Assembly (NCBI GenBank): GCA_950097015.1
Contig: CATNEN010000010.1
Span: 1,240,001-1,304,000, forward strand
DNA from: Macrostomum hystrix
Lineage: Eukaryota > Animalia > Platyhelminthes
Direction: 5' to 3'
DNA: 64,000 nt
The notes below the pieces were generated by a model. The model was given only the letters and a program-made list of their open reading frames with translations. It made no database searches and had not been told where the DNA came from. The translations under genes were made by a program, and so were the position numbers. This document shows positions 25,876-46,360 of the stretch, in pieces; within the stretch, counting starts at the first letter, position 1, and every line of letters begins with the position of its first letter.

Positions 25876-27655
25876 TTATACGCCAGCACGCTTGGCCTTG
25901 ATGATGCTAATAGTCTTTGGTGTCTCCCTGATGGTCAGGCTGGCATCAAGAGCCTTGGCGGTGGACACCAGCTGTCTACACTCGACCTCAGTCAGGGTCG
26001 ACTTGCCCAAGACAATATTGGGCTTGCTGGCATCGGCCAAGAAGTCGGTCAGCCGTTGGCGCAGTTCAGCATTCGGCTGCAGCTGCTCAGCCTGCTGCTG
26101 CTGTTGCTGCACGAGGGTGACGCCGGCGGCGCCAGACAAGCCAGTGGCCATTCTACGGTAGAGTTGGCGCTGCTCATCGTTATACTTTCTCTGCTCGTCA
26201 TCGTTGCGCCGAATGGCCTCCTCGATCCGGGCGCGCGAATCCGTGGACAGACCGCTGCCGTGGATGCGGCGGCAGGCCTCCAGCGATTTGGCAGCTTCGG
26301 CGTACTGGCCCATGGAGCATAGTGCTTCGCCGCGCCACAGCAGCGCCTTGGAATTGCGCTCGTCTCGCTTCAGGGCCTCGTTGCACTCCCGAACCACGGA
26401 GGGAAACTTGCCCAGCCGGTACAGCGTGATGGCCTTGTTCACGCAGATCACAGCGAGCTCGCGGTTCATGCGGGTCTCCTCCTGTTTTCATAGAGGGAAA
26501 GGCGGTTAACACTAAAGCGATGGGGTTCAATCAATCAAACTGTGACCAGCTCCCATGCAATCAATTCGGCAACTCGCCTCGTCGTTAGAAATGTTCATAG
26601 AGGCCAGCACGGACTCTGCGCAGCGGTACTTCTGGAATGCCAGGAAGTACATCCGCCTATTGAACAATTCCTTTGCGGAGTGGCGGAGGCTCTGCACAAC
26701 GCCCAGCTGCACCCGGAAGGGCACCTGGCGCCGTTCTTCTTCGTCGCGCGAGTAGAAGGCGTCCACCGAGTGGCTGTCGCAGAAGCTGACCAGCTCGATT
26801 TCGGCCAGCACCGGCTCGCCGCCTGGAATCCGGGGCGGAGCGCCGCGCTCGCCAAGGAAGGCCTCCGGGCGGATGATAAACTGGGACCGCTCCCCCTTGC
26901 ACATGCTCGCGAGGGCCCAGTCGATGCCAATGATCAGGCTGCCGCTGTTAAGCCGCTTGGTGTACGGCTTGGCGTCAAAGTGCTGCCTGGTTGAGTCGAA
27001 CGGCTCCACCAGAGACTCGGCAAACAAGGTGTAGTGGAAAGAGACCAGGGCGTCTGGAGGCGGCGGGCTGCCGGAGCCGAACTTCTTCACCCGCTTAAAC
27101 AGCACGCCGTGCCGGTCGGAGCTCGGGTCGGGGAACACGTCAGTCATTGTACGCCGCTTCCGTTCGAACAGGGAGACTTTGCCATCCTCTTCCTCACCAT
27201 CATCCAGCTCATCATCGCTGATGCCAACCTGCATGGTCAATACAAAATGGACAGAGATTGCTTTGTTATTGCGGATCGCTACTGACAGTAGTCCGTTAGG
27301 GTGCCAGAATACTGGCTATTTGCAATACATTTTTATTAAAAAAGGCATTCAATCAGCCGACCTGCTCCATGCGCCGCAGGAACTCCGGGTCGCGGAACAG
27401 GCCCTGCAGCAGCTCAGCCTCCTGGTCCTCCTCATTGTTGGCCGCAACGGAGAATTCCACACCGGCGCTGGACTGGATCTGGGAGCGCCTGATCGGCTGG
27501 CTCAGGCGCGAGCCGGACGCATCGACGAGACCGCCGTCTGACGGCATCTGGCGGATGATGCATTTGATACGGTTCTTCTCGTCCTCGGTGAGGTTCAGTT
27601 CCTGCTGCTGCTTATCGCCGCAACCTTCGACACGGCTAGCTTCCATTGAAGGCAT
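25876..27655 (-). CDS. FKBP6: FKBP6/shutdown-type PPIase + TPR co-chaperone, 516 aa; exons 27655-27362, 27228-26578, 26481-25876
   Basis: FKBP domain (GVLFKRVKKFG, HYT..EPFDST, PPRIP..VLAEIEL) plus three TPRs (NSKALLWRGEA) and a GVEF + acidic N-terminus as in shutdown; intron 1 GT-AG, intron 2 GC-AG, both phase 0. Confidence 0.88.
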
Positions 27656-27704
27656 CTTTAAATTGACTGCCAAGGCGGTAGGTTTGCAGGTTGCTCTGCA
27701 GGCG

Positions 27705-28344
27705 GACTGACTGACTGACTGCCTGACTGCCTGACTGACTGACTGACTGACTGCCTGACTGCCTGACTGACTGACTGCCTGACTGACAGCCTGACTGACT
27801 GACTGCCTGACTGACTGACAGCCTGACTGACTGACTGCCTGACTGACAGCCTGACTGACTGACTGCCTGACTGACTGACAGCCTGACTGACTGACTGCCT
27901 GACTGACTGACTGACTGACTGCCTGACTGACTGACAGCCTGACTGACTGACTGACAGCCTGACTGACTGAATGACTGACTGACTGACTGACTGACTGACA
28001 GCCTGACTGACTGACAGCCTGACTGCCTGATTGACTGACAGCCTGACTGACTGACTGCCTGACTGACTGACTGCCTGACTGACTGACTGACTGACTGCCT
28101 GACTGACTGACTGACTGACTGCCTGACTGACTGACTGCCTGACCTGACTGACTGACAGCCTGACTGACTGACAGTCTGACTGACTGACTGACTGACTGAC
28201 TGACTGCCTGACTGACTGACTGACTGCCTGACTGACTGACTGCCTGACTGACTGACAGCCTGACTGACTGACTGCCTGACTGACTGCCTGACTGACTGAC
28301 TGACTGCCTGACTGACTGACTGACTGACTGCCTGACTGACTGAC
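27705..28344. repeat. Compound tetranucleotide microsatellite (GACT/GCCT/GACA)n, ~640 bp
   Basis: Direct reading; ends 50 bp upstream of the FKBP6 ATG. Confidence 0.97.
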
Positions 28345-28860
28345 AAAAAATACATGCAAGACACAAAGCAGCTAAGGACGAGCTGCAAATGGCATTTAAA
28401 AAATATATTTGTGCTTAATAAATTCCATAAATAACAGTAAATAGAAGTTTCACATGCATATTTGTTTCGTCAGACAAAATGATTTAGAAGTTTGCTAAGC
28501 TAATTTTTGCATTTTGTGGTACCACTTTAGAGTGAGATTTGAAGTCATTCTTTAAATGACAAACGAATTACGAAATGACAAAAAATGAAATTTGCTTTGG
28601 AGGCAAAAAATATTGCACAATTCAACCAGAATCACAGAACACCAAATCGACAGCTGGCGACTGCTTTCGCCAAAGCAACAGCAGCCAGCAATGGGATTGT
28701 GGAGTTATTCTCTATTGCACACAACAAGCAATTAGCTGATAAAACTGATATGACACACTCTAATAAACAGGAAATTAACACGGGATAAAATCTGTCCTCA
28801 AGTCTGATTAGCTGAAGCAGAACCAGAAAACCTATCGCTAAAGAAAATACGCTGCTCCCT

Positions 28861-29148: not shown

Positions 29149-32100
29149 CTACTTCAGCATCTTATTTGCCCGGTCATTGGCCTCCTGAATGCGCTTGTCG
29201 TTTGATTCCACCTGCGGGGATATTCGCGGCGCATTCGCTGCTTAAATTTTGCGCTAAAAAGCTTTGAGAAAAGTAAATAAGTACATAAAAATCAAGGCAG
29301 GTGCGGGTGTCCGCTCTGAATCTCAGTGGGTAGGTGTGGGTGTCCATTCAATCTGCACTGAATCTCAGTGACTGAATCTCTCTGCACTGACTGTCCTGAA
29401 TCTCATTGGGAGATGTGTGGTGTCTGATCAAACTGCACTGAATCTCATTGGGACATGTGTGGTGTCTGATCAAACTGCACTGAATCTCATTGGGACATGT
29501 GTGGTGTCTGATCAAACTGCACTGAATCTCATTGGGACATGTGTGGTGTCTGATCAAACTGCACTGAATCTCATTGGGACATGTGTGGTGTCTGATCAAA
29601 CTGCACTGAATCTCATTGGGACATGTGTGGTGTCTGATCAAACTGCACTGAATCTCAGTGGACATGTGTGATGCGTGATCAAACTGCACTGAATCTCATT
29701 GGGACATGTGTGGTGTCTGATCAAACTGCACTGAATCTCAGTGGACATGTGTGATGCGTGATCAAACTGCACTGAATCTCATTGGGACATGTGTGATGTC
29801 TGATCAAACTGCACTGAATCTCATTGGGACATGTGTGGTGTCTGATCAAACTGCACTGAATCTCATTGGGACATGTGTGGTGTCTGATCAAACTGCACTG
29901 AATCTCATTGGGACATGTGTGGTGTCTGATCAAACTGCACTGAATCTCATTGGGACATGTGTGGTGTCTGATCAAACTGCACTGAATCTCAGTGGACAGG
30001 TGTGGGTGTCCACTCTGCTAGGTGGTGTGCATGCACTAAATCAGACGAGCCAGAATCTTAAGTAGCATTTTTCTCTTACTAGTTACTAATTGACTGGCGT
30101 ACAATAAAATGCTACACTTTCAAATCCGACGCGGCAGTGCCCGGAGGTGCTAGCCGAGTTGACCTAGGAGCAGTTCGACCCAGTTAGCAACTCAGCTTTG
30201 CCCTTCCCCCGCATTCCCTGCGGCTTTTCCATTCCATTTATTTTTCATGCGAGTCCATAAATAGAGTCGATCGCTCGGCGCTGCTAATCTGTATAACGCA
30301 GACTGGCTTCCTGCCACGGCAGCTGCAGCTCCGAGCAAATAGGAACTGGGAGAGAGAAAGCCTATTAAACTGCGAATAACTGGGCTGAGCAAATACAACA
30401 AGGCTACATTTAAATACAATAAGACGTGCAAACATCAGATGAAAGAGCGATTGGCAAAGGAAAGCTTTGAGAGAAGGGCGGGAGACAGCCCACAAGAATC
30501 CAGCGGGCAGCACTGGGAGGTGGGCCAAGGGGTGTTGTAGGTTTAGTTTCCGAGCAGAATCTGCAGCCATGCTCACAGCAGGCTATCATGAGCAGACTTA
30601 CTCACGGCCTGTCAACCTCTTGTCGTAGGCCTTCAATCCGCGTGTCCTACTCAGCACTCGGTTCTCAGCCTTATCTGACTGCACTAGAGTAAACACCAAG
30701 ACTGACCTTCAGTTGCTGATATCAAGGCAGATTGCATCTACAGCTAGTGTGGATGGTGACAAATGGGATACAGAAATACTTTTGAACTCCCCCTCGATAT
30801 GGGGTTAAACACGGATTGAAAGACTGAACTCGCTAGACCGATGTAAATAAATGCAAAATGATAAGCTGCGTGGGTGTGGTGGCTGATCAAACTGCCTGAA
30901 TCTCAGTGGACATGTGTGATGCCTAATCAATCTGTCCTGAATCTCAGTGGACATGTGTGATGTCTGATCAAACTGCACTGAATCTCAGTGGACATGTGTG
31001 ATGTCTGATCAAACTGCACTGAATCTCAGTGCAGTTTTGTTTGATTGATTTCTAGCGAAGACAAATGGCTGACCCGAGATATAAAAGTGCGCAATTTTTT
31101 AGCACAATAAAACAACAAATCACAAGCAGCGCATTGGCAGTCCTGCAAGATCATGACAAGCCAAGGTTGAAATGGCTGCAGGTCATCAGGGAGGATTAGC
31201 CAGGAGTTATCCCTTGCAGACCGGCAGGTAATCCGAGAAAAAATGCCCAGTTGGAAGTCAAAGAGATAAATAAGCTCAGGCATTGGACCACTCCCCCCGG
31301 CTGTGATTGATTCTGGGGAGACTGCCGAGCCCAGGCAACATGCAGGGCGTTGAGCGCTGGAATTTTATCCCCAATCCTGATCTCTGCCGCAGCTGGGCAG
31401 GCCAGCCCGATTGGCTGGGCATCCCAACGGCAGCCTTGAGTACACAGCACATCGCGACACAAAATTTGCAGACAATCGCGCTGCTTCTTAATAGCTCTCC
31501 TCGCCTCACTCACTTCCTGTCATGCATCAGGAGTCATGCATCAGCTTTTTCTCCTCACCTTGTTCTACCCATTATGGTAGGAAGGGGCTGTAGCCTAGTG
31601 GTCAGTGGTCAGACTTGAAGGTTGGGCGTTCGATTCCCGACTCCACTGGAACAATTTGTGCCCTTTAGCAAGACACCTAACTCTGCATTGCTTCAATTCA
31701 TTCAGCTGTTAAATGGGTGCTAGCATTAGCTGGGATAATTGAGGGTTGGTGTGGCACCCCCTCCCTCAGTCCATGGACTGAACAGCCGTACGTCCATGGA
31801 ATAATGACTAATCGACTAATGTAAAAGAAGGGAGCTCGCCTTGACTTTGATGCGGTCCAGCTGGCGATTCTGCGAGTCGATCTCGCTGCCCATGTCGATG
31901 GCCATGTTGCGCAGATTGCTGACCATGTTGCCCACCTCCTGAATGTTGTTGTCCATTTCGTCCTCCCGGGCGTCTTTTGTGATGCTGAAATTGCACCAAT
32001 AACAAGAGTGAAACAAGAGTGACACTGCTGAGAGTGAAACAAGAGTGACATTGTTGAGAGTGAAACAAGAGTGTCATTGTTGAGAGTGAAACAAGAGTGA

Positions 32101-35100
32101 CGCTGCTGAGAGTGAAGGAGTGACAGCAGGAGCGCAGAGGACTAACCGAGTTATGTAGCCGCCGTGCACAGCCATGCCATTCTGGTCGACCAGAACCCGG
32201 GGCCCGTTGGTATTCACGGCGCCATCGTCGTCCTTCTTGAACTTCTTGTCAAAGTCGCCTTTGCCAGCTCTGCAGCGGTGAGACGTGCGGCTTTTTATTA
32301 TTTGCGAAATCCTTATCAGTAAATACAATTATCGGCTATGCTGTGGTCATAAGTAACATAAATTCTAGGTTAAACCAAGTTATTTCGCACAAGATAAAGA
32401 TGACAAAAATGGTACGACTTATTCTGTAGTTATTATCGCGAAGGGAGCAAAATGGATAGAATGTGAAGAGTTTTAGGGGTAGAAAGAGGAGACTAGGAGG
32501 GTAGTAGGAGGGGTAGAAAGAGGAGACTAGGAGGGTAGTAGGAGGGGTAGAGAGAGGAGACTAGGAGGGTAGTAGGAGGGGTAGAAAGAGGAGACTAGGA
32601 GGGTAGTAGGAGGGGTAGAAAGAGGAGACTAGGAGGGTAGTAGGAGGGGTAGAAAGAGGAGACTAGGAGGGTAGTAGGAGGGGTAGAAAGAGGAGACTAG
32701 GAGGGTAGTAGGAGGGGTAGAAAGAGGAGAGTATTATAGGTATAAAAGTATAGAAGGGGGTAGAAAAGAGTAAAAGGGGTAGACAGTGAAGAGTAGGTGG
32801 GTAAATAGGCAAGTTTAAGATAAGAGGAAAAAAAAAGTTAAAATCCTACTGCATTATAAAAAGCATCAAAGTTAAATTAATATTTCCTGAATTACAATAT
32901 TTCTCAATACAGTCATTTATCACGCAAAAATCTATCTTATCTTTACTTCATGATTTATAATCACTGTGAAGCCTAAACTAATAATAAATTTGACCTAGAT
33001 TTGCTTCCTTGTGCTTTTGTGCCGAGCAGGAGAGCCCCTGGACTAGGGAAAAATTTCGGACGGGGAAGCTAAGCCTAAACTGTCTGGTTATGAAGATAAT
33101 TAATGCCGCAAAAGTTTGGGATATAAAAACCAGCCGCGACTCCATCCATTCCCTGAAATCCCCAATTCCATATTAAAGCAGATCTGCGGAGCCTGTTTTG
33201 AATGCTGAAGCAAAGCTAGAAAAGCTACCAATTGCTTTTGCTATCAACTAAATGCAATGTTTAACTTGATCTTTGGCTAGCTGTGAGCTAGTTTTATCGT
33301 GTACATACTATATATTGGAAGTCAAATGGAGACTAGAATTAGGTTTAATTTAACTAGGCCAGAACACACGAGCCACGCCTTTCGCCTGTCAGTAGCTTGC
33401 AGTGCAAAGGAAGGCAAAAGAAGCTGTGAAACCGGGCCTTCTTGATACCGGGTGGGTAGGGGGTAGGGCACAAAGGCCCCCACCCGGCGGCCCGCCTTTG
33501 AACGGGGAAATAAAATGAGAAGGAAGCGAATCAAGCCAGGACAGGAAGAGGCAGAGCTTGGAGTGGAGGCGGGAATCAAAATTGCAGATGAAAAGGGAAC
33601 GGGTAAAAAAGGCGAAACGGGTTCCGATGAAAAGTGCAGCAGAAACGGAGTAGGATATTAGAATGCTGAAGAGCAGAGAACGCCAAGATGAAAAGGGCAT
33701 TTCGTTTTCGATCATTCATTCATTACGAGCTAGCAGCATAGTCGGGCAGTCAGCTTGGTGCCAAACAAGTTCCAGGCCATCTCCGCTAAACAAACACGGA
33801 CAGAAATGCTGCTTTAAGGGCCTCTCATAGACGCAGCAAACACACTCAGCTTGTTAGTATCAAGCGCTAGGCAACAGGCGACACTGAATCTACTCACGCA
33901 CTCAGCTGAGCAATACGACTTACGTTTTTTTCACATGAGACCTAACGAAATGAAATCTAGGCCAATAGGAATTCGTTCAGTCAAGGACAATGAGGATGAT
34001 GGAGCAATTATTGAACTATTTTGCTGTAGAAATTCATCGCTCACAAGCGTTCAGCTAGGTGTCAAGTGTTGGCTGGCTGCTGCAGCGCTTACGAGTGGAA
34101 AATGACGAAGTTGGAGGAGGAAACCAATTGGGAAAAAGCAAGCTAGGCTTTGGGCTGAGCTGGCAGTCTGGGACAGAAAGAGGCCGCGTGGACTTTTTCA
34201 CCCTACGGGAGAATGCCTTCACCACAACCGCATGGATTCATTTCAGTCTGATGGAAGCGTTCAAATTAGCAGGAGTGCCTGGATAGCCAGCAACTCAGAC
34301 CTGTGTGCGCACACGTGTACAGAAAAAAGACAGCGGCATCTTGAAAGAATTCTTTCGTTAAAGGAGGACGTAAGTGTTGAATAGCAAACTATGCAGGCAC
34401 AGTCTAGATGAGCATTGAACAAAAATAGTCCGCAGTCCAACCGCGGGCCATAAGAAATGAAAGGCTGGCTCGCTAGCAGGGCCTGGCCGCATTAAAAGCA
34501 GCCAGGCGATGTGCGGCAGTTGTGGCAAGGCTGCCGGATTCAAAAATGGAAAGTGAGGAAAATTAGAGGCAGAGCAGAGTGAGGTGGTTAGCTGTGGGAA
34601 ATTGCGGATGATGGAGGACACCAGCGGTGCTCAATAATTCAGTGAGGAGGATCTAAGTAGGTGCGCGGAGAAGAACGAGTTCGTGGAGTAGCACGGTGTG
34701 TGGCTAAAAGTTTTAGCACGCCACTGAACTCAAGAAAAAAACTAGTCGACATGTTTTATCACCGACGAGTGAGGAAGGCTGAACAGATAATAAAGCAGCC
34801 CTGCAGCCTAATGTATGCGAGGCGACTTTTTTACGTTCTGAGACAGAACAGGAAAAAGATCCCATCTGGTTGTTAGGCGCCGATGTTTTTTCTAGGTGCC
34901 GACTATGTTTCAGACTTTCTCAGACTTGAAACTGAAAATACAGCTTTTGCACTTTGCCACTTGTGCAATATTGAGCTTGTCTTCCCATTAGACAAGTTTA
35001 AATGTGTACACAGCCATACCAGGGCAATAAAAGATAGCCAGCATAGAGATTCACAGCGTGGGATTTCGGGAGCTGCTTGCCGTGAGCAATAAAAGATTTG

Positions 35101-38100
35101 GGCCTGGTTCGCGCGAGATGAAGCCAAGCCCGCAACGCAGAATGAGGTCTGGGAAGTGGGGGAATTTTCCCAGAGATTATACTAGAGTGAATACGAGCGT
35201 TTGAGGGGCGATAATGAGATGTGGGAGTTTCGAGCAAAATGGGAAGCCAGCGAGCGAGTGGATAGTCCCAACAGAGCACGAGAGACGATAGGGAAGTTAG
35301 GGAGATTGTGGGAGCATTTGGGAACTGAGTAGGCCTACTGCTGAGCAGGAGAAGTCCCAATTACGCTTATCAATCGGTAGCAGAGTGACTGGGGAGTAGC
35401 GGACCTGCCGGCTGGAATGAATTGAGATGGCAATCTCGCGCGCATTAGGATCCCGCCACAAATGCGACTCTCGAAATAAATATATGAAGCACCCACAGTA
35501 TCGATTTTCAACAGTGCGCGGGACTATTCGGCTATAAATCCAAGCGGGTGGAAAGCCATAAAGTAATAAAAATGCGAGTCGATTGCAAAGACTTCGGGTA
35601 GACTAGAAATTAGCATGGCAACACCTTCGGCAACGTCAATCAGAGGACAGCGGAATGCTCACTTGTTCCACGGCAGGATGCACAACCCGCAGCACTTGTT
35701 TAGATCGTCCAAATTCTTTTCGGCGTCCTTCATGTCCTGATTGATCTGGTCCATGCCCTCCTCGATGCGGTCGAGTTGTTCTGTGGATGCGAGCATATTT
35801 CAGTGGCTAGCATTGCTGCTCAAGATGTGTACAGCCAAAATCTATAATATTGATTATTAAATATGTGCAGCTGAATGCTACATCTGGTTTTTAGCTGGAG
35901 ACAATCTACAAATTGTCTCTGTCTTCCTCCTTCAAACACTTCGTCTACCCGTTCTAAGCTAGCCGCACATGTCTATAGGCCAGACTAGCTGGTTAAAAGT
36001 CCAACGATGCAAAAATAGGTTAGCATCTATTGTGCGGAAAATTGGAGTAAAATGTAAAAAATTAAACAACAGCTAAATCTAAGCTGCAAAGCTTTCTCAT
36101 AAATCCCTTCTCCTAATATATGGGAGACATGCAACAATCGTTTTATTGGAGTGGGAAAAACGCTGATAACAATAGACTGACTGGGTGGAATAGCCTTCGC
36201 TAAAACTAGACAATCTGTAGCAAGTAACAATGCCACTATTGTTGAACCTATTGTTAGTAGCATGTCATATGCCACCAGATAACTGGGCTGAATCTAACTA
36301 GAAATCATAGGAAACATTTGAATTGAAAAAGAAAAGCTTAAAGTTTGCAAAAATCTATTTAAAAGATTCTATATATAAAAGAAACACAACAATCGATTAG
36401 TTATGCATAGACACAGCAATAAATAGAGTGGATAGTTAAGCAAGCCAACTGACACAGAATGCGCTCTCTCTCTTACCGCCCTGATCGTCAAGCATGACGA
36501 GAGTCGAAATTCCGGCCTCCTTAGCCTGCGTTAGCGGTGTGTTTGTATGGTTGTTGTTCTTGTGGTTAAATATTGCGCAACGTGTGTGAGGTGCGAGAAA
36601 TAAGCGGTGCGACTCAAGTATCTGGCAATTCGATTCCGTTACAAATTTATAAACGATATTATACTAGTGTGGGTCTAAGATTATGTACTAATAAATGCAA
36701 TTAAGCTACATTAGAATGTAATCGGTTAGCCACAATAGCCAGATAGGAGCTTGTTAAGTCCTCGCCGAGCTTCACCATTTGAATCAGATCCGAATAATAA
36801 ATCGCCTAATTTTTTGGTCAATATCGCCAAAGGATCAATATCTAGGTCCTGATTTTCACTTCATTTAACTGAGCAACATTCCAGCTAAGTGACACATTGC
36901 CCATTCCGAAAACAAGCTTTGTTGTCACGGATATAGCATATAGCTAGTAGCATTAACATGGAAGACCTACTGGCGTCTTGGTTCAGAGTTAATAACTTAT
37001 TTTAATAGGGGTATCCAAGGCTAACGCTGGTTGCTATGCAGCAAGCAGGCCGGATATATCGATATAATTAGACGGCATTAGAAGCGACACAATCAATGAG
37101 AAAAAAAACAAATTTTGTCCCCTAAAGCAGCTCGGCTTTGGCTTGAATGAAACCTCCAATCACTCGTTAGCCAATAATGGCATGAAACAAAGGCAAAGAC
37201 CGACGTTAAGCTTGGCGGAACAACAAAGAAGCATATCAAGCGCCACCAACATTTAGCTTGACAAGAGGGCCTGACAGCTTGAATAGCCCTAACTTCGGCC
37301 ACTCTTACCGCCTTGATCGTCCAGATGTACCAATGTAGTAATGGCTGATTCCTTTGCCTGTGCAGTACATGCGCGGAGGTCAGCGCAATAAGTTATCGTT
37401 ATAACAAAAAGCCCACTAGAATCTATACATCTATAGCATCTATGAATAATGGAGTTGACAGACCGAACCGATAATAGACAGTTTGCACCTTGTAAAAGCT
37501 TATCGGCTAGCTTGAGCATGAAAGCCCTATGCATCAGTCTGAGCAAGACAGTTCATGTGATCTTCAATTGTCTTCACATGTGTCAAAACCCAACACTTCA
37601 AGTCCTTGGTAGTGAGCGATGCGATTTAAACTCACTACGGAAGGCACAGCATAACACAGATCTGCAGTCGACACTGAGAATAAAGCACCAGGCATTGCTG
37701 TCATCTACTGCAAACGAGGTTGCTATAGCTTCAAAAAACGCCCTCCGGAGGGGCCAAATGACAGACAGCTCAAGGCAGGACTTAATCAAATTTCCCCCTT
37801 TTCTTTCTCTATAAATTAATTACTCGGAGCTGCTTAATCCGTGTGTCCAAGGGCGCGCACTTCCAATCAGATCAGCTCGCTGCCCTGCTCAATCTGGAAA
37901 TTATATTCACTTCTGGTCGACTAGACCGAAAAAATCGACAGAAATTCTAGAGCTTCCGACCGCCGCAGGCGCCTTGTCTATGCAACTGTGTGTAGTGCAT
38001 AGCTCTGCAGATATGCCACTTCAACAGAAGAACAATCTTTTCTTGCCAACAAGTACACACGCAGTGCAGCTTCCCACAAAAGGAAATCCGCATTCCCTTT

Positions 38101-41100
38101 CTACGCCTGAGAAGCAAGTTGAAGGGCTGGTGGGCGAGAGTGAAGTGCAAGGAGCGGAGAAGACCCGCTCTCCGCCTCACATCAGATGAGAGTCTCGAGC
38201 TGGCCCGCCACCACCTGATGCCGGAGTCACTCGATGAACGTCAAGGCTGGCATGCGATTGGGCTGGGGCATCGATGGCCATTCAATATATGCAAATAAAC
38301 AGATGCTGGCCCGGTCAGGAAACTGCAGAACAGCTGCTTCTGCCAGCAGAGACAAAAACAAATTTATCCACAGCAAAACTATAGGAAAGCAATTTACATG
38401 AGCCATTAAAAACAACTGACAAACAATAAACTATGAACCATGGCGGGCAATGAGAAACAAGGCCCAGCTTACCTCTTCGCAGAGAGCAACCATTCTTCGT
38501 GTGGACTCCAGCGACTGAAATTGAGAGAAGGATGAAGCAGTTGGATTACTGAGTGCCTCGCATGGAGAAAAAAATCATTATCTTAACCTTAACAGATTTT
38601 CAAAGAAAATTACACCAAAGGGCTACATGTTGGGATGAGAAGGAATGATATTATCTACCATAGCATAGCGAACTATAAGACGATTATTGTTAAAAGCATT
38701 TCTCCGCCTTTCACCCCGCCAGGGCAGGACGGGATGGACAGCCGGCGAGATGGGAGAAAGTGATCCCTGTGGGTGAGGGGGGGGGGCAACCCGCGTTAAG
38801 TCGGCTGCAGCGATGAGGAAGGCAGATGGAATGCAGGGCGGGGCCGTAAGCCCTCCGGGTTGTGAGGTGGGTCCAGCGCTGGCACGGACGGATACGAATC
38901 GGCGTCGACTGAAGCAGAAACAAGCGGCCGAGACAGAGCGGAATAATAATAATAAAACACGAAACACAAGTGGGCAGTAAAAGCCGAGCTGTCACACACA
39001 CACAGAGCCGGACAGTTGGGGCAGCGGGAGACGCACAAAAAACTGGAGAACAGATTGAACGCAGCATCCGCCCGGCGCATCTCAGGGTTCTCAGTTCTCA
39101 CGCACGATCAATCCCTTAGTTCTTGAGCGCACAGAAAGAAGGCACGATTGAGAGTCGACTTTGACATTAAAATGACAAGAAGCGGCCGAGCTTTTCTCGT
39201 ACAAATTTCCTAGTTTTTTCTATTCTCATCTCAGCCAACTGGAGCAGCTAATTCGGGGAGAAAGCTGGAAAAACTTTATTTGAAAGAAGAGGAAGGCCTC
39301 AGAAATAGCTAAAGAGAAATGCAAAGAGACGGTGAGCGGAAGAGGCACAAAGGACGCTGTCAAGTATTACGCTCGTATATAGTGGCTGCAGCGGATACAA
39401 TGGAACGAGCACTAACTTTTAGTACTTGGCAGTGAGAGCTACGTGACCCTGGCACTGTTGCCCGAGGGCAATCCGATAGGAATTATGGGAAAATGCGAAT
39501 AACTCTTTCTCTGTTATCCTTAATCACAAGTACGATACTCGCAAAAAAGAGAAATAATCGTTATTTCAATTTTTTGCATCCTTATGATCAAACATAGAGA
39601 ATAAGATATCTTGTCCGCTCATTTTGAGGATCTAGATATCTTGTCCGCTCATTTTGAGGATCTAGATATCTTGTCCGCTCATTTTGAGGATCTAGATATC
39701 TTATCCGCTCATTTTGAGGATCTAGATATCTTATCCGCTCATTTTGAATATCTAGATATCTTATCCGCTCATTTTGAATATCTAGATATCTTATCCGCTC
39801 ATTTTGAGGATCTAGATATCTTATCCGCTCATTTTGAGGATCTAGATATCTTATCCGCTCATTTTGAGGATCTAGATATCTTATCCGCTCATTTTGAATA
39901 TCTAGATATCTTATCCGCTCATTTTGAGGATCTAGATATCTTATCCGCTCATTTTGAATATCTAGATATCTTGTCCGCTCATTTTGAGGATCTAGATATC
40001 TTGTCCGCTCATTTTGAGGATCTAGATATCTTGTCCGCTCATTTTGAGGATCTAGATATCTTGTCCGCTCATTTTGAGGATCTAGATATCTTGTCCGCTC
40101 ATTTTGAGGATCTAGATATCTTATCCGCTCATTTTGAGGATCTAGATATCTTATCCGCTCATTTTGAGGATTTAGATCTATAGCCTGCTCATTTTGAATA
40201 TCTAGATATCTTATCCGCTCATTTTGAGGATCTAGATATCTTATCCGCTCATTTTTGAGGACCTAGATATCTTATCCGCTCATTTTGAGGATCTAGATAT
40301 CTTATCCGCTCATTTTGAGGATTTAGATCTATAGCCTGCTCATTTTGAATATCTAGATATCTTATCCGCTCATTTTGAGGATCTAGATGTCTTGTCCGCT
40401 CACTTTGAGTATCTAGATGTCTTGTCCGCTCATTTTGAGGATCTAGATATCTTATCCGCTCATTTTTGAGGACCTAGATATCTTATCCGCTCATTTTGAG
40501 GATCTAGATATCTTATCCGCTCATTCTGATGAACTAGATCTATTGCTGCTCATTTTGAGGATTTAGATCTATAGCCTGCTCATTTTGAATATCTAGATAT
40601 CTTATCCGCTCATTTTGAGGATCTAGATGTCTTGTCCGCTCACTTTGAGTATCTAGATGTCTTGTCCGCTTATTTTGAGTATCTAGATATCTTATCCGCT
40701 CACTTTGAGTATCTAGATGTCTTCTCCGCTTATTTTGAGTATCTAGATGTCTTGTTCGCCTATTTTGAGTATGTAGATATCTTATCCGCTCACTTTGAGT
40801 ATCTAGATGTCTTCTCCGCTTATTTTGAGTATCTAGATATCTTATCCGCTGTTTTTGAGTATCTAGATGTCTTGTCCGCTTATTTTGAGTATCTAGATAT
40901 CTTATCCGCTCATTTTGAATATCTAGATATCTTATCCGCTCATTTTGAGGATCTAGATATCTTATCCGCTCATTTTGAGGATCTAGATATCTTATCCGCT
41001 CATTTTGAGGATCTAGATATCTTATCCGCTCATTTTGAATATCTAGATATCTTATCCGCTCATTTTGAGGATCTAGATATCTTATCCGCTCATTTTGAAT

Positions 41101-44100: not shown

Positions 44101-46360
44101 GTAGTATATAAATAATACGAAATTATTATCGACCGATCGACCAATTCAATCAGCTGAGCGCTAGACTGGAGAGCCCAAGCGAAGACGGCAGTTTGGGGCA
44201 ACTGTAACTGGTCTGATCAGTCGGTGAATGCCAAAGTCCTAACTGGCTCCCCATGCATCATCACTCGACACATCCCACCGCTGCCACCCAGTCGACTCCG
44301 CGCTTGTCCGACTTATCATTTGATATTTGATTTGATCGGACGGGCCAAAACTGAGGCAGGGATAGGGTTGCCGGAGAGGAAAGGCGGGGCCAGGAGGGGA
44401 CGAGGAAGGCCTTGACAAACAAGGATCAGAAAGAGAGAAAGAGAGGAGATAAGAGGAGAAGTAAGTCCGATTTGCCAGAGTTAGTCAGTAGGGAAATTAA
44501 CTTAATCAAGGCCGCACCCTAAGCCTCATCCTGACAGCAAGAATATATATAAATAGATATACATATACATAAATGCATGAAGCAGCAGAAGCACGCATGG
44601 CATCGGGCCGCAGGTCTGAGTGAGACCAAACCTTCTGCCTCCGGTCGGACACGGGAACCGTCCGTCAACCCTCCATCCTCCCCGGTCCTTCAAGCGCAAT
44701 TCCACAGGGGACGCGCCGCGCCGGCCTGAAGGCGAGCGAGCGCAAATTGAGATTGCTTCGGGGTCTGGGGAGCAGCAGGACCCGGTTAGAACAGTTCGAT
44801 GAAAAAATGGACAGAAAAGCAGCGGCTACTCGAATTGTTTCGCAAAATAGTTCAGCCAGGATCAGGTGAATGCAGGAACCATAGACTCTTTCTCCATGTT
44901 CGATAGGCATCAAACTAGCTAATTAAAGAGCGTCGCTTGCAGCGGAAACAGTTTTAAGTCAGATAAGTGTACGACTTTGTAAGACTAAGCTTAAGGAAAA
45001 GCGAAAGCAAACTGAACTAAATCGAAATACACACCAGAAAATATGCATTTTAGAACAGTTAGACATGTGCAGAAAGATTGGTAAAAAGATAGTAAAACTA
45101 AAATAAACAAGTACCTCTCATGCACTAATCCGCTTTATGCACAAAGCGATTAACTGGAGATACAAATAAGGAAAAAAACATCTAACACTAATGGAAAATG
45201 TGCGATTGTAAAGACTGAAATTAGGTAATGCATTTGACAACTTAAATGTAAACATAAAGTGTGATTTGTTGATGAAATTCAGGATGAATAATGAGCAACT
45301 TACCCACAGACACGAATTAATATGTTGAATTACATCTGCATCTATAGATATTATTTTGGTTTGGAATCCAAATAAGCTATCAAAAAGATAAGGCTAAAAT
45401 CATCCTCGCAACTGACATTTCCAGCGATTTCTTATGTGCGCATCTGCTAAGTTGCCTAAATCACAAGACCCTACTTATAGTAGAACATTATGAATGCGGA
45501 AGTATTCATAAGATTAAGATTTTTATTATATTATAACAAAATTGTAATAGTATGCTTGCTGCTGTCAGGAACCAGCTGAAGGGAAGGCTGTCAGGAACCA
45601 GCTGAAGGGAAAGCTGTCGGGAACCAGCTGAAGGGAAAGCTGTCAGGAACCAGCTGAAGGGAAAGCTGTCAGGAACCAGCTGATGGGAAAGCTGTCAGGA
45701 ACCTGCTGAAAGAAAGGCTGTCAGGAACCAGCTGAAGGAAAGGCTGTCAGGAACCAGGTAAAGGGAAGGCTGTCAGGAACCAGCTGAAGGAAAGGCTGTC
45801 AGGAACCAGCTAAAGGAAAGGCTGTCAGGAACCAGCTAAAAGGGAAGGCTGTCAGGAACCAGGTAAAGGAAAGGCTGTCAGGAACCAGCTAAAGGGAAGG
45901 CTGTCAGAAACCAGCTAAAGGGAAGGCTGTCAGGAACCAGCTGATGGGAAAGCTGTCAGGAACCAGCTGATGGGAAAGCTGTCAGGAACCTGCTGAAAGA
46001 AAGGCTGTCAGGAACCTGCTGAAGGGAAAGCTGTCAGGAACCAGCTGATGGGAAAGCTGTCAGGAACCAGCTGAAGGAAATGCTGTCAGGAACCAGCTGA
46101 AGGAAAGGCTGTCAGGAACCAGGTAAAGGGAAGGCTGTCAGGAACCAGCTGAAGGAAAGGCTGTTAGGAACCAGCTGAAGGGAAAGCTGTCAGGAACCAG
46201 GTAAAGGGAAGGCTGTCAGGAACCAGCTGAAGGAAAGGCTGTCTTTAGATCAGACTAAAAAGTAAATAAAACTTACCTCATCAGTTTTCTGATTCATTAG
46301 AAGTTGAATTTCTTGCAATTCTGTTTGGGGTCCATCTTGAGCTGAATGAACATGTGCCAT
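29149..46360 (-). CDS. SNAP25: SNAP-25 (Qb/Qc t-SNARE); exons [46360-46277 or 42390-42268], 38514-38473, [37357-37309 or 36525-36477], 35780-35663, 32269-32147, 31984-31840, 29211-29149
   Basis: [14 protein letters not shown]; [29 protein letters not shown] palmitoylation cluster; [36 protein letters not shown]; all phases close; exon sizes 42/49/118/145 as in vertebrate SNAP25. Confidence 0.95.
29320..30015. repeat. 42-bp minisatellite, ~16 copies (GCACTGAATCTCATTGGGACATGTGTGGTGTCTGATCAAACT)
   Basis: Direct period 42; in the last SNAP-25 intron. Confidence 0.95.
30870..31035. repeat. Second cluster (~4 copies) of the same 42-bp unit
   Basis: CTGATCAAACTGCACTGAATCTCAGTGGACATGTGTG as in 29320..30015. 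Confidence 0.9.
31583..31797 (+). mobile_element. tRNA-derived SINE family A copy in SNAP-25 intron
   Basis: TAGCCTAGTGGTCAG A box, GTTCGATTCC B box, CORE-like GCAAGACACCTAACTC and the same tail as 12872..13071. Confidence 0.75.
32001..32125. repeat. 26-bp repeat, ~4.5 copies, filling a 162-nt SNAP-25 intron
   Basis: GAGTGAAACAAGAGTGACACTGCTGA, period 26. Confidence 0.85.
32478..32732. repeat. 34-bp purine-rich minisatellite, ~7.5 copies
   Basis: GAGACTAGGAGGGTAGTAGGAGGGGTAGAAAGAG, period 34. Confidence 0.95.
36477..36525 (-). CDS. SNAP25: SNAP-25 alternative exon 3b ([16 protein letters not shown])
   Basis: 49 nt, CTAACGCAG acceptor, GTAAGA donor, phase 0 to 1. Confidence 0.9.
37309..37357 (-). 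CDS. SNAP25: SNAP-25 alternative exon 3a ([16 protein letters not shown])
   Basis: 49 nt, TGCACAG acceptor, GTAAGA donor, phase 0 to 1. Confidence 0.85.
39598..42185. repeat. 30-bp satellite, ~86 copies, with a 1141-bp higher-order duplication
   Basis: Unit TCCGCTCATTTTGAGGATCTAGATATCTTA; variant blocks recur at +1141 (40183/41324, 40632/41773). Confidence 0.95.
42268..42390 (-). CDS. SNAP25: SNAP-25 alternative first coding exon 1B (MANRR...[18 protein letters not shown])
   Basis: 41 codons, phase-0 GTGCGT donor, aligns with the SNAP-25 PxTELEEL...DE N-terminus. Confidence 0.8.
45561..46243. repeat. 26-bp minisatellite, ~26 copies (CTGTCAGGAACCAGCTGAAGGGAAAG)
   Basis: Direct period 26. 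Confidence 0.95.
46277..46360 (-). CDS. SNAP25: SNAP-25 alternative first coding exon 1A ([28 protein letters not shown])
   Basis: 28 codons, GTAAGT donor in phase 0, strong resemblance to invertebrate SNAP-25 N-termini (PxTELxEIQ..N..TDE). Confidence 0.85.

Follow-up and report, generated by a model that had tools for sequence, protein, structure and literature searches.

Two tandem copies of a 49-nt SNARE-helix exon in a SNAP-25 gene of the flatworm Macrostomum hystrix

In this study, we describe a SNAP-25 gene on the minus strand of a 64,000-nucleotide stretch of the Macrostomum hystrix genome (GenBank assembly GCA_950097015.1, contig CATNEN010000010.1, positions 1,240,001 to 1,304,000; the whole stretch is called the window below). 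Between its 42-nt exon 2 and its 118-nt exon 4 lie two 49-nt exons, 3a and 3b, which appear to be a real pair of alternative exons maintained by selection. Outside exons 2 to 4 the gene was pieced together from motif scans, open reading frame scans and direct reading. In window positions, its parts are the following.

46277..46360, minus strand: exon 1A, first coding exon; matches the N-termini of the Macrostomum lignano proteins P0171 and P0172
42268..42297, minus strand: exon 1B, alternative first coding exon; taken from the upstream end of the dominant RNA contigs, reverse-complemented
38473..38514, minus strand: exon 2, 42 nt, ending in phase 0, the common upstream donor; from the sequence and the RNA joints
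37309..37357, minus strand: exon 3a, 49 nt (16 residues plus 1 nt), the divergent upstream copy and minor form
36526..37308, minus strand: intron between 3a and 3b, 783 nt, GT..AG; RNA contig coverage low and patchy, at depth 2-7
36477..36525, minus strand: exon 3b, 49 nt (16 residues plus 1 nt), the canonical flatworm copy and major form
35663..35780, minus strand: exon 4, 118 nt, homologue of the vertebrate exon 5a/5b and common downstream acceptor
32147..32269, minus strand: exon 5, linker region; PF00835 match
31840..31984, minus strand: exon 6, second SNARE motif, with an apparent GC donor; placed by heptad register and the match to M. lignano
29149..29211, minus strand: last coding exon, including the TAG stop

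The gene is a SNAP-25 gene (Qbc t-SNARE). Its conceptual protein has the typical composition of the family, with PF00835 on exon 5 (26 bits against a cut-off of 25), a CCGLC cluster and two SNARE motifs, and it is close to the M. lignano protein P0172, which itself bears PF00835. The exon 6 peptide retrieved 1103 relatives in a protein search, the cysteine cluster is encoded by exon 4, and 3a and 3b both end in DDQG, which carries the 0-layer Gln.

The two 49-nt exons are equal in length and phase and have intact splice sites, as tandem duplicate exons should. The boundaries read cag/GCAAAG...AAGGCG/gtaagag for 3a and cag/GCTAAG...AGGGCG/gtaagag for 3b, in both cases with AG and GT at the splice sites. 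A repeat search recovered the pair as a 59-nt direct repeat of 71% identity, with starts 832 nt apart, and found no similarity of the surroundings in the flanking intron beyond the splice-site consensus. These two are the only copies of the exon in the whole window (BLOSUM scores 79 and 77, next best 36), and the 118-nt exon occurs once in the gene region (score 218, next best 15). An earlier sequence-only reading had proposed the pair and distinguished it from the vertebrate 5a/5b exon; its coordinates, peptides, exon lengths and splice sites are all correct on the minus strand, and the distinction holds, as the 118-nt exon that is duplicated in vertebrates is single here.

That reading had also argued that the frame forces the two exons to be mutually exclusive, and this is borne out. 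With 3a or 3b alone the frame is kept, giving a protein of 207 residues when the first coding exon is 1A and of 189 when it is 1B. When both are spliced in, the junction reads GGC TAA and the product ends ...DDQG-G-stop at the start of 3b; when neither is spliced in, the shifted frame meets a stop 51 nt into exon 4. Therefore, mutual exclusion is enforced at least by the reading frame. The stops from double inclusion and from skipping lie far upstream of several exon junctions, and transcripts of both kinds are expected to be removed by nonsense-mediated decay. The only inverted repeats are imperfect ones of 12-26 nt at a frequency no higher than expected by chance, and they were rejected as evidence for an RNA docking/selector mechanism. 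One intronic segment about 255 nt downstream of 3a (37043-37054) is complementary at 11 of 12 positions to 36511-36522, the 5' end of 3b. Pairing of the two in the pre-mRNA could hide the acceptor of 3b; however, the same 3-kb stretch contains eleven short inverted repeats of this sort, and the 12-nt complementarity may be a matter of chance.

Expression was followed in assembled Logan contigs, not raw reads, of four runs, three of which (X1, X3 and X5) stand under one organism label. The runs were found by matching a 3-kb genomic stretch, which gave one run, and then the last exon with the 3' untranslated region, which gave more; no contig of run X2, labelled as a different organism, was placed on the stretch. 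The joints 38473>36525 and 36477>35780 are present in runs X1, X3 and X5 at depths of 46, 17 and 22, and exons 2-3b-4 therefore make up the dominant mRNA. Its contigs extend upstream into the sequence of exon 1B. The gene has two alternative first coding exons, the short 1B that the dominant contigs use in three runs and the long 1A that matches the annotated N-termini of M. lignano. Exon 3a is represented in run X1 by one contig of 185 nt and depth 3.3, in which the final 29 nt of exon 2 are spliced to the acceptor of 3a (38473>37357) across a skipped segment with GT..AG ends. The acceptor of 3a is therefore in use in vivo, though weakly: in that one run its depth reaches at most about 7% of that of the 3b junction. 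The sequence-only reading had listed four junctions to be looked for, and three were found; the fourth, 37309>35780, which would join 3a to exon 4, was not seen in the contigs. It had also held that 3a would be a dead duplicate if no RNA included it, and the exon 2-3a contig answers that point in favour of the exon. When two alternative exons are equally long, assemblers tend to collapse the bubble that they create, and contigs of this kind show presence, not absence.

Two further observations come from the same contigs. A contig of run X3 (depth 36) holds the first 30 nt of exon 4 (35752-35781) and then a differently coded upstream exon, an indication that the organism expresses a second SNAP-25 paralogue; a paralogue of SNAP-25 is also present in M. 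lignano (loci L003/L004). In run X1 the intronic contigs occur in two versions with six differences from the window, at 36791-36843 and 37200, which suggests allelic or strain variation inside the 3a-3b intron.

The divergence between the two exons is distributed very unevenly over their codons. They differ at 17 of 48 compared bases and at 4 of 16 residues, with no stop and no indel, and by the Nei-Gojobori method the synonymous differences amount to 10.2 of 11.5 sites (proportion pS 0.88, saturated) and the non-synonymous ones to 6.8 of 36.5 sites (pN 0.19). For scale, pS is 0.35-0.45 between 3b and exon 3 of M. lignano and 0.88 between 3b and Schistosoma, where the peptide is identical. Given this saturation, the values suggest that the duplication is not recent. 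We simulated 3a as evolving neutrally and 3b as accepting synonymous changes only, and asked how often 17 or more differences would accumulate with no more than 4 residue changes and without a stop: the pattern arose in 0 of 4000 simulations at every equal branch length tried (P<0.001), and with an unrealistically long 3b branch, the most lenient setting, its probability was at most 0.04. Moreover, 3a has kept its splice sites and exact length despite the divergence, and the probability that all four splice nucleotides stay unchanged would be 0.02-0.3 for d=1.0-0.3. Judged from these 16 codons, the pattern is a clear sign of purifying selection on the peptide of 3a and speaks against a duplicate in decay as well as against a pure poison exon. 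With synonymous sites saturated, few residues changed and neutrality rejected, 3a looks like a preserved minor alternative exon, and this rejection of neutral decay also argues against the idea of a dead duplicate, which the sequence-only reading had named among the outcomes that would refute it.

The nearest proteins are three M. lignano SNAP-25 models, followed by those of other flatworms, and two M. lignano loci (L001 and L002) share with the window a downstream FKBP-TPR neighbour. Between the window and M. lignano the exons are 84-90% identical in DNA and the introns give no alignment, so that intronic synteny is unusable. Exon 3 is single in all four M. lignano loci, two syntenic and two of a paralogue, and in the Schistosoma mansoni locus; regular-expression searches, blastn at word size 9 and BLOSUM sliding scans over these whole loci (L001-L004 and L006) revealed no 3a-like copy. 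The canonical 3b peptide is identical in 24 of 24 flatworm proteins retrieved. Homologue and representative protein-database searches returned neither the window's own protein nor a 3a isoform, and only M. lignano proteins were close. Since M. lignano lacks 3a, the exon either arose after the split from that species or was lost following it.

The reading that we prefer, and to which we give a probability of roughly 0.6, is that 3a and 3b are tandem duplicates used as alternatives, with 3b as the default, 3a as a rare substitute and the duplication placed within the macrostomid lineage. Several points weigh against it. The exon 2-3a contig crosses 3a and then runs through 107 nt of the downstream intron, and its depth of 3.3 resembles the intronic background of 2-7, itself patchy, in the same runs; 3a was found in one of three runs, and neither 3a joined to exon 4 nor 3a joined to 3b is present in the contigs of the runs. 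Rare variants drop out of contigs, which means that presence and absence are both weakly measured. The selection test covers 16 codons under a simple substitution model, and, with the exon lacking from M. lignano and S. mansoni, no orthologue confirms its conservation. Some of these points also favour a different explanation, namely that 3a is a non-coding leftover whose good acceptor is occasionally used and yields only unproductive RNAs, which would be splicing noise or, if 3a acts as a poison exon, would reduce the output of SNAP-25. In favour of this, the only 3a contig retains the downstream intron at a depth near the intronic background, no 3a>exon 4 joint was seen, 3a spliced together with 3b creates an immediate TAA, and the copy is absent from M. 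lignano, the nearest available relative. However, nothing would make a leftover or poison exon preserve a SNARE-compatible peptide, and here only four residues have changed at synonymous saturation, all heptad and interface residues are kept, no stop or indel has entered, the neutral simulation rejects the pattern and both splice sites are intact after such divergence. For these reasons we regard the leftover or poison explanation as rather unlikely. Under the preferred reading of two alternative exons, we infer that a productive 2-3a-4 mRNA is made. Exon 3b would then serve in almost all transcripts, 3a would be rare and probably restricted to certain cell types or states, and the frame would enforce the choice, with both-in and both-out forms lost to nonsense-mediated decay.

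The residues at stake allow a cautious proposal about function. The 16-residue exon corresponds to mammalian residues 39-54 and covers core layers of about -4 to 0 in SN1. In mammalian numbering 3a carries the changes A42S, G43A, S45T and M49H, whereas K40, both acidic residues, the 0-layer Gln and every heptad hydrophobic residue are retained. The sequence-only reading had noted the histidine at Met49 and the retention of the Gln and the acidic pair, and had equated the Gly-to-Ala site with human G43 and with the Drosophila G50E allele; each of these is borne out. Following the crystal-structure literature, G43 would be the layer -3 residue of the SNARE core. With Ala at this glycine, 3a would subtly alter N-terminal core packing or helix propensity, and it would also modify a surface position nearby, in what may be a minority of cells. 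The glycine that 3a changes, mammalian G43, is G50 of the fly, the residue of the G50E allele (PMC1808484), and K40, D51 and E52 belong to the primary interface with synaptotagmin-1 (PMC9811660). Exon 3a thus affects the same glycine as Drosophila SNAP-25ts, but SNAP-25ts is an induced Gly-to-Glu change with a strong phenotype, whereas that of 3a is a conservative Gly-to-Ala change, naturally encoded in an alternative exon.

The homologous exon is duplicated well beyond the flatworms. At four loci checked genomically it is present in two or three tandem copies, each 49 nt long, in the same phase and bounded by AG and GT, and the copies in all four lie between the homologues of exons 2 and 4, with the canonical copy first in each (4/4). 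The positions of the copies within each locus are given below.

2961/3855/4606: three tandem copies in the aphid Aphis craccivora (locus L005)
17270/21858/25088: three tandem copies in the wasp Copidosoma floridanum (locus L009)
20598/22943: two tandem copies in the gastropod Pomacea canaliculata (locus L007)
53416/56539/57643: three tandem copies in the annelid Owenia fusiformis (locus L008)

In the set of retrieved proteins, the 16-residue exon is the sole difference between RefSeq isoforms of many species. In the molluscs Pomacea, Mercenaria, Patella and Babylonia a canonical isoform of the SKEAGIKTLVMLDEQG type stands beside one of the SQDVG(V/I)KT... type; the same pattern is found in horseshoe crabs, scorpions, crustaceans, nemerteans and many insect orders, and Copidosoma has three variants (SKEAGIRTLVALDDQG, SEELGANTLMMLDHQG and SHEVGMKTLVMLDEQG). 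A Gly-to-Ala change at the site altered in 3a is also present in isoform X3 of Mya arenaria (SKEMAIKTLVDLDDQG) and in an isoform of Physella acuta (SQDVAVKT...), and the position of Met49, at which M, A, V, D, N, L, F and T all occur, is the most variable one among the natural variants. Isoforms of the QDVG class are hypervariable at the residue that immediately precedes the 0-layer Gln, which is the E52 position of the synaptotagmin interface. Alternative use of the 49-nt exon is widespread in protostomes and probably ancient, and the alternatives are already embodied in public gene models. Full-text literature searches returned no published description of this invertebrate exon cluster, and a literature search for Macrostomum together with SNAP-25 returned no paper; a butterfly paper reports a splicing change in SNAP25 and does not describe the exon. 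The same exon is swapped in other phyla, and this segment of SNAP-25 therefore tolerates exon swapping. The view of the sequence-only reading, that the flatworm pair is an independent invention of SNAP-25 isoforms, was overstated in so far as the same exon is duplicated across protostomes; what may stand is that the flatworm copy itself arose independently.

The breadth of this distribution raises the possibility that 3a is a functional descendant of the ancient protostome alternatives (the QDVG, HEVG and EDVGA classes) that has strongly diverged or been partly homogenised towards 3b and was lost in M. lignano and the schistosomes. The tandem clusters that this 49-nt exon forms at the loci of the annelid, gastropod, aphid and wasp, with two or three copies each, are in keeping with such descent. 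So is the existence of near-identical alternatives such as SQDVGVKTLVMLDEQG in horseshoe crabs and molluscs, which makes the cluster old, and the synonymous saturation between 3a and 3b is compatible with great age. In location, phase and tandem arrangement, 3a and 3b conform to the protostome clusters. However, the canonical KEAGI copy comes first in all four of those clusters, whereas here the divergent copy is upstream, and a second exon is absent from every other flatworm protein or locus examined. Neither does the peptide fit the x-(Q/H/E)-(D/E)-(V/I/L)-G signature of the alternatives: 3a reads A-K-E-S-A, shares K-E (positions 2-3) and I (position 6) with the canonical exon, and bears the flatworm-specific A1 and D14. 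Its residues are of the canonical, flatworm type, with 12 of 16 identical to the flatworm canonical exon and 9-11 of 16 to the canonical exons of other phyla, against only 6-8 of 16 to the alternative classes. Hence we hold descent from the old alternatives to be very unlikely. Because 3a is canonical-like and upstream and flatworms otherwise have a single exon, a lineage-specific re-duplication of the flatworm-type exon within the macrostomid lineage appears the most likely origin on the sequences compared. In this scheme the canonical exon of flatworms would have been the template of 3a, which would not descend from the old protostome alternatives.

A broader scenario may be offered tentatively, at somewhat less than even odds: flatworms lost the ancient protostome copies, and one macrostomid lineage re-created the pair by a fresh duplication, converging on a change of the type seen in a bivalve isoform, with Ala for the layer -3 Gly and a polar residue at Met49. 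If this is true, the 16-residue stretch, which spans layers -4 to 0 and part of the primary synaptotagmin interface, would be a recurrent tuning knob of neuronal exocytosis.

The vertebrate SNAP-25a/b isoforms are a known case of the kind, in which a tandemly duplicated exon in the first SNARE helix is used in a mutually exclusive manner and the isoforms differ in a few residues (PMC2581893). The flatworm pair affects the same gene and follows the same principle. However, the vertebrate pair consists of the 118-nt exon and the flatworm pair of the preceding 49-nt exon, and both vertebrate isoforms are abundant and developmentally switched, whereas 3a is rare; the 3a/3b pair is analogous to 5a/5b and not homologous to it. 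With the clusters of arthropods, molluscs, annelids and nemerteans, on the other hand, the flatworm pair shares a homologous exon of identical length and phase, and it differs from them in that their canonical copy comes first and their alternatives carry a Q/H/E-D/E-V/I-G signature, whereas 3a lies upstream and is canonical-like. The M. hystrix pair is a new lineage's instance of an event already contained in many invertebrate gene models.

Isoform switching of SNAP-25 through exon 5a/5b is physiologically important in vertebrates, and across a very wide range of protostomes it is another exon of the first SNARE helix that is exchanged; the flatworm appears to have evolved such a pair anew, on its own. 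Variants that occur naturally at the layer -3 glycine and beside the synaptotagmin-binding acidic residues are ready probes of N-terminal zippering and sensor binding. For this window the significance is modest, the extra exon being rare in the available RNA and its productive use probable at best.

The SNAP-25 gene is flanked by two further genes in the window.

25879-27315, minus strand: FKBP/TPR-type gene, the downstream neighbour; syntenic with M. lignano locus L001
56031-57530, minus strand: voltage-gated calcium-channel gene, the upstream neighbour

Minor features were noted elsewhere in and around the gene. The donor of exon 6 (31838-31839, minus strand) appears to belong to a GC-AG intron, the exon ending in ...GTCAAG/gcgagc; to judge from the sequence, this boundary alone would keep the SNARE heptad register (...IKVK/VESNDK, compared with ...IKVKAESNDK in M. 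lignano). A tandem repeat with a period of about 100 nt occupies 32340-32850 (minus strand), in the intron between exons 4 and 5, and a short-period repeat, with a reading of SQSVSQ..., lies at 27400-28400 (minus strand), downstream of the 3' end of SNAP-25.

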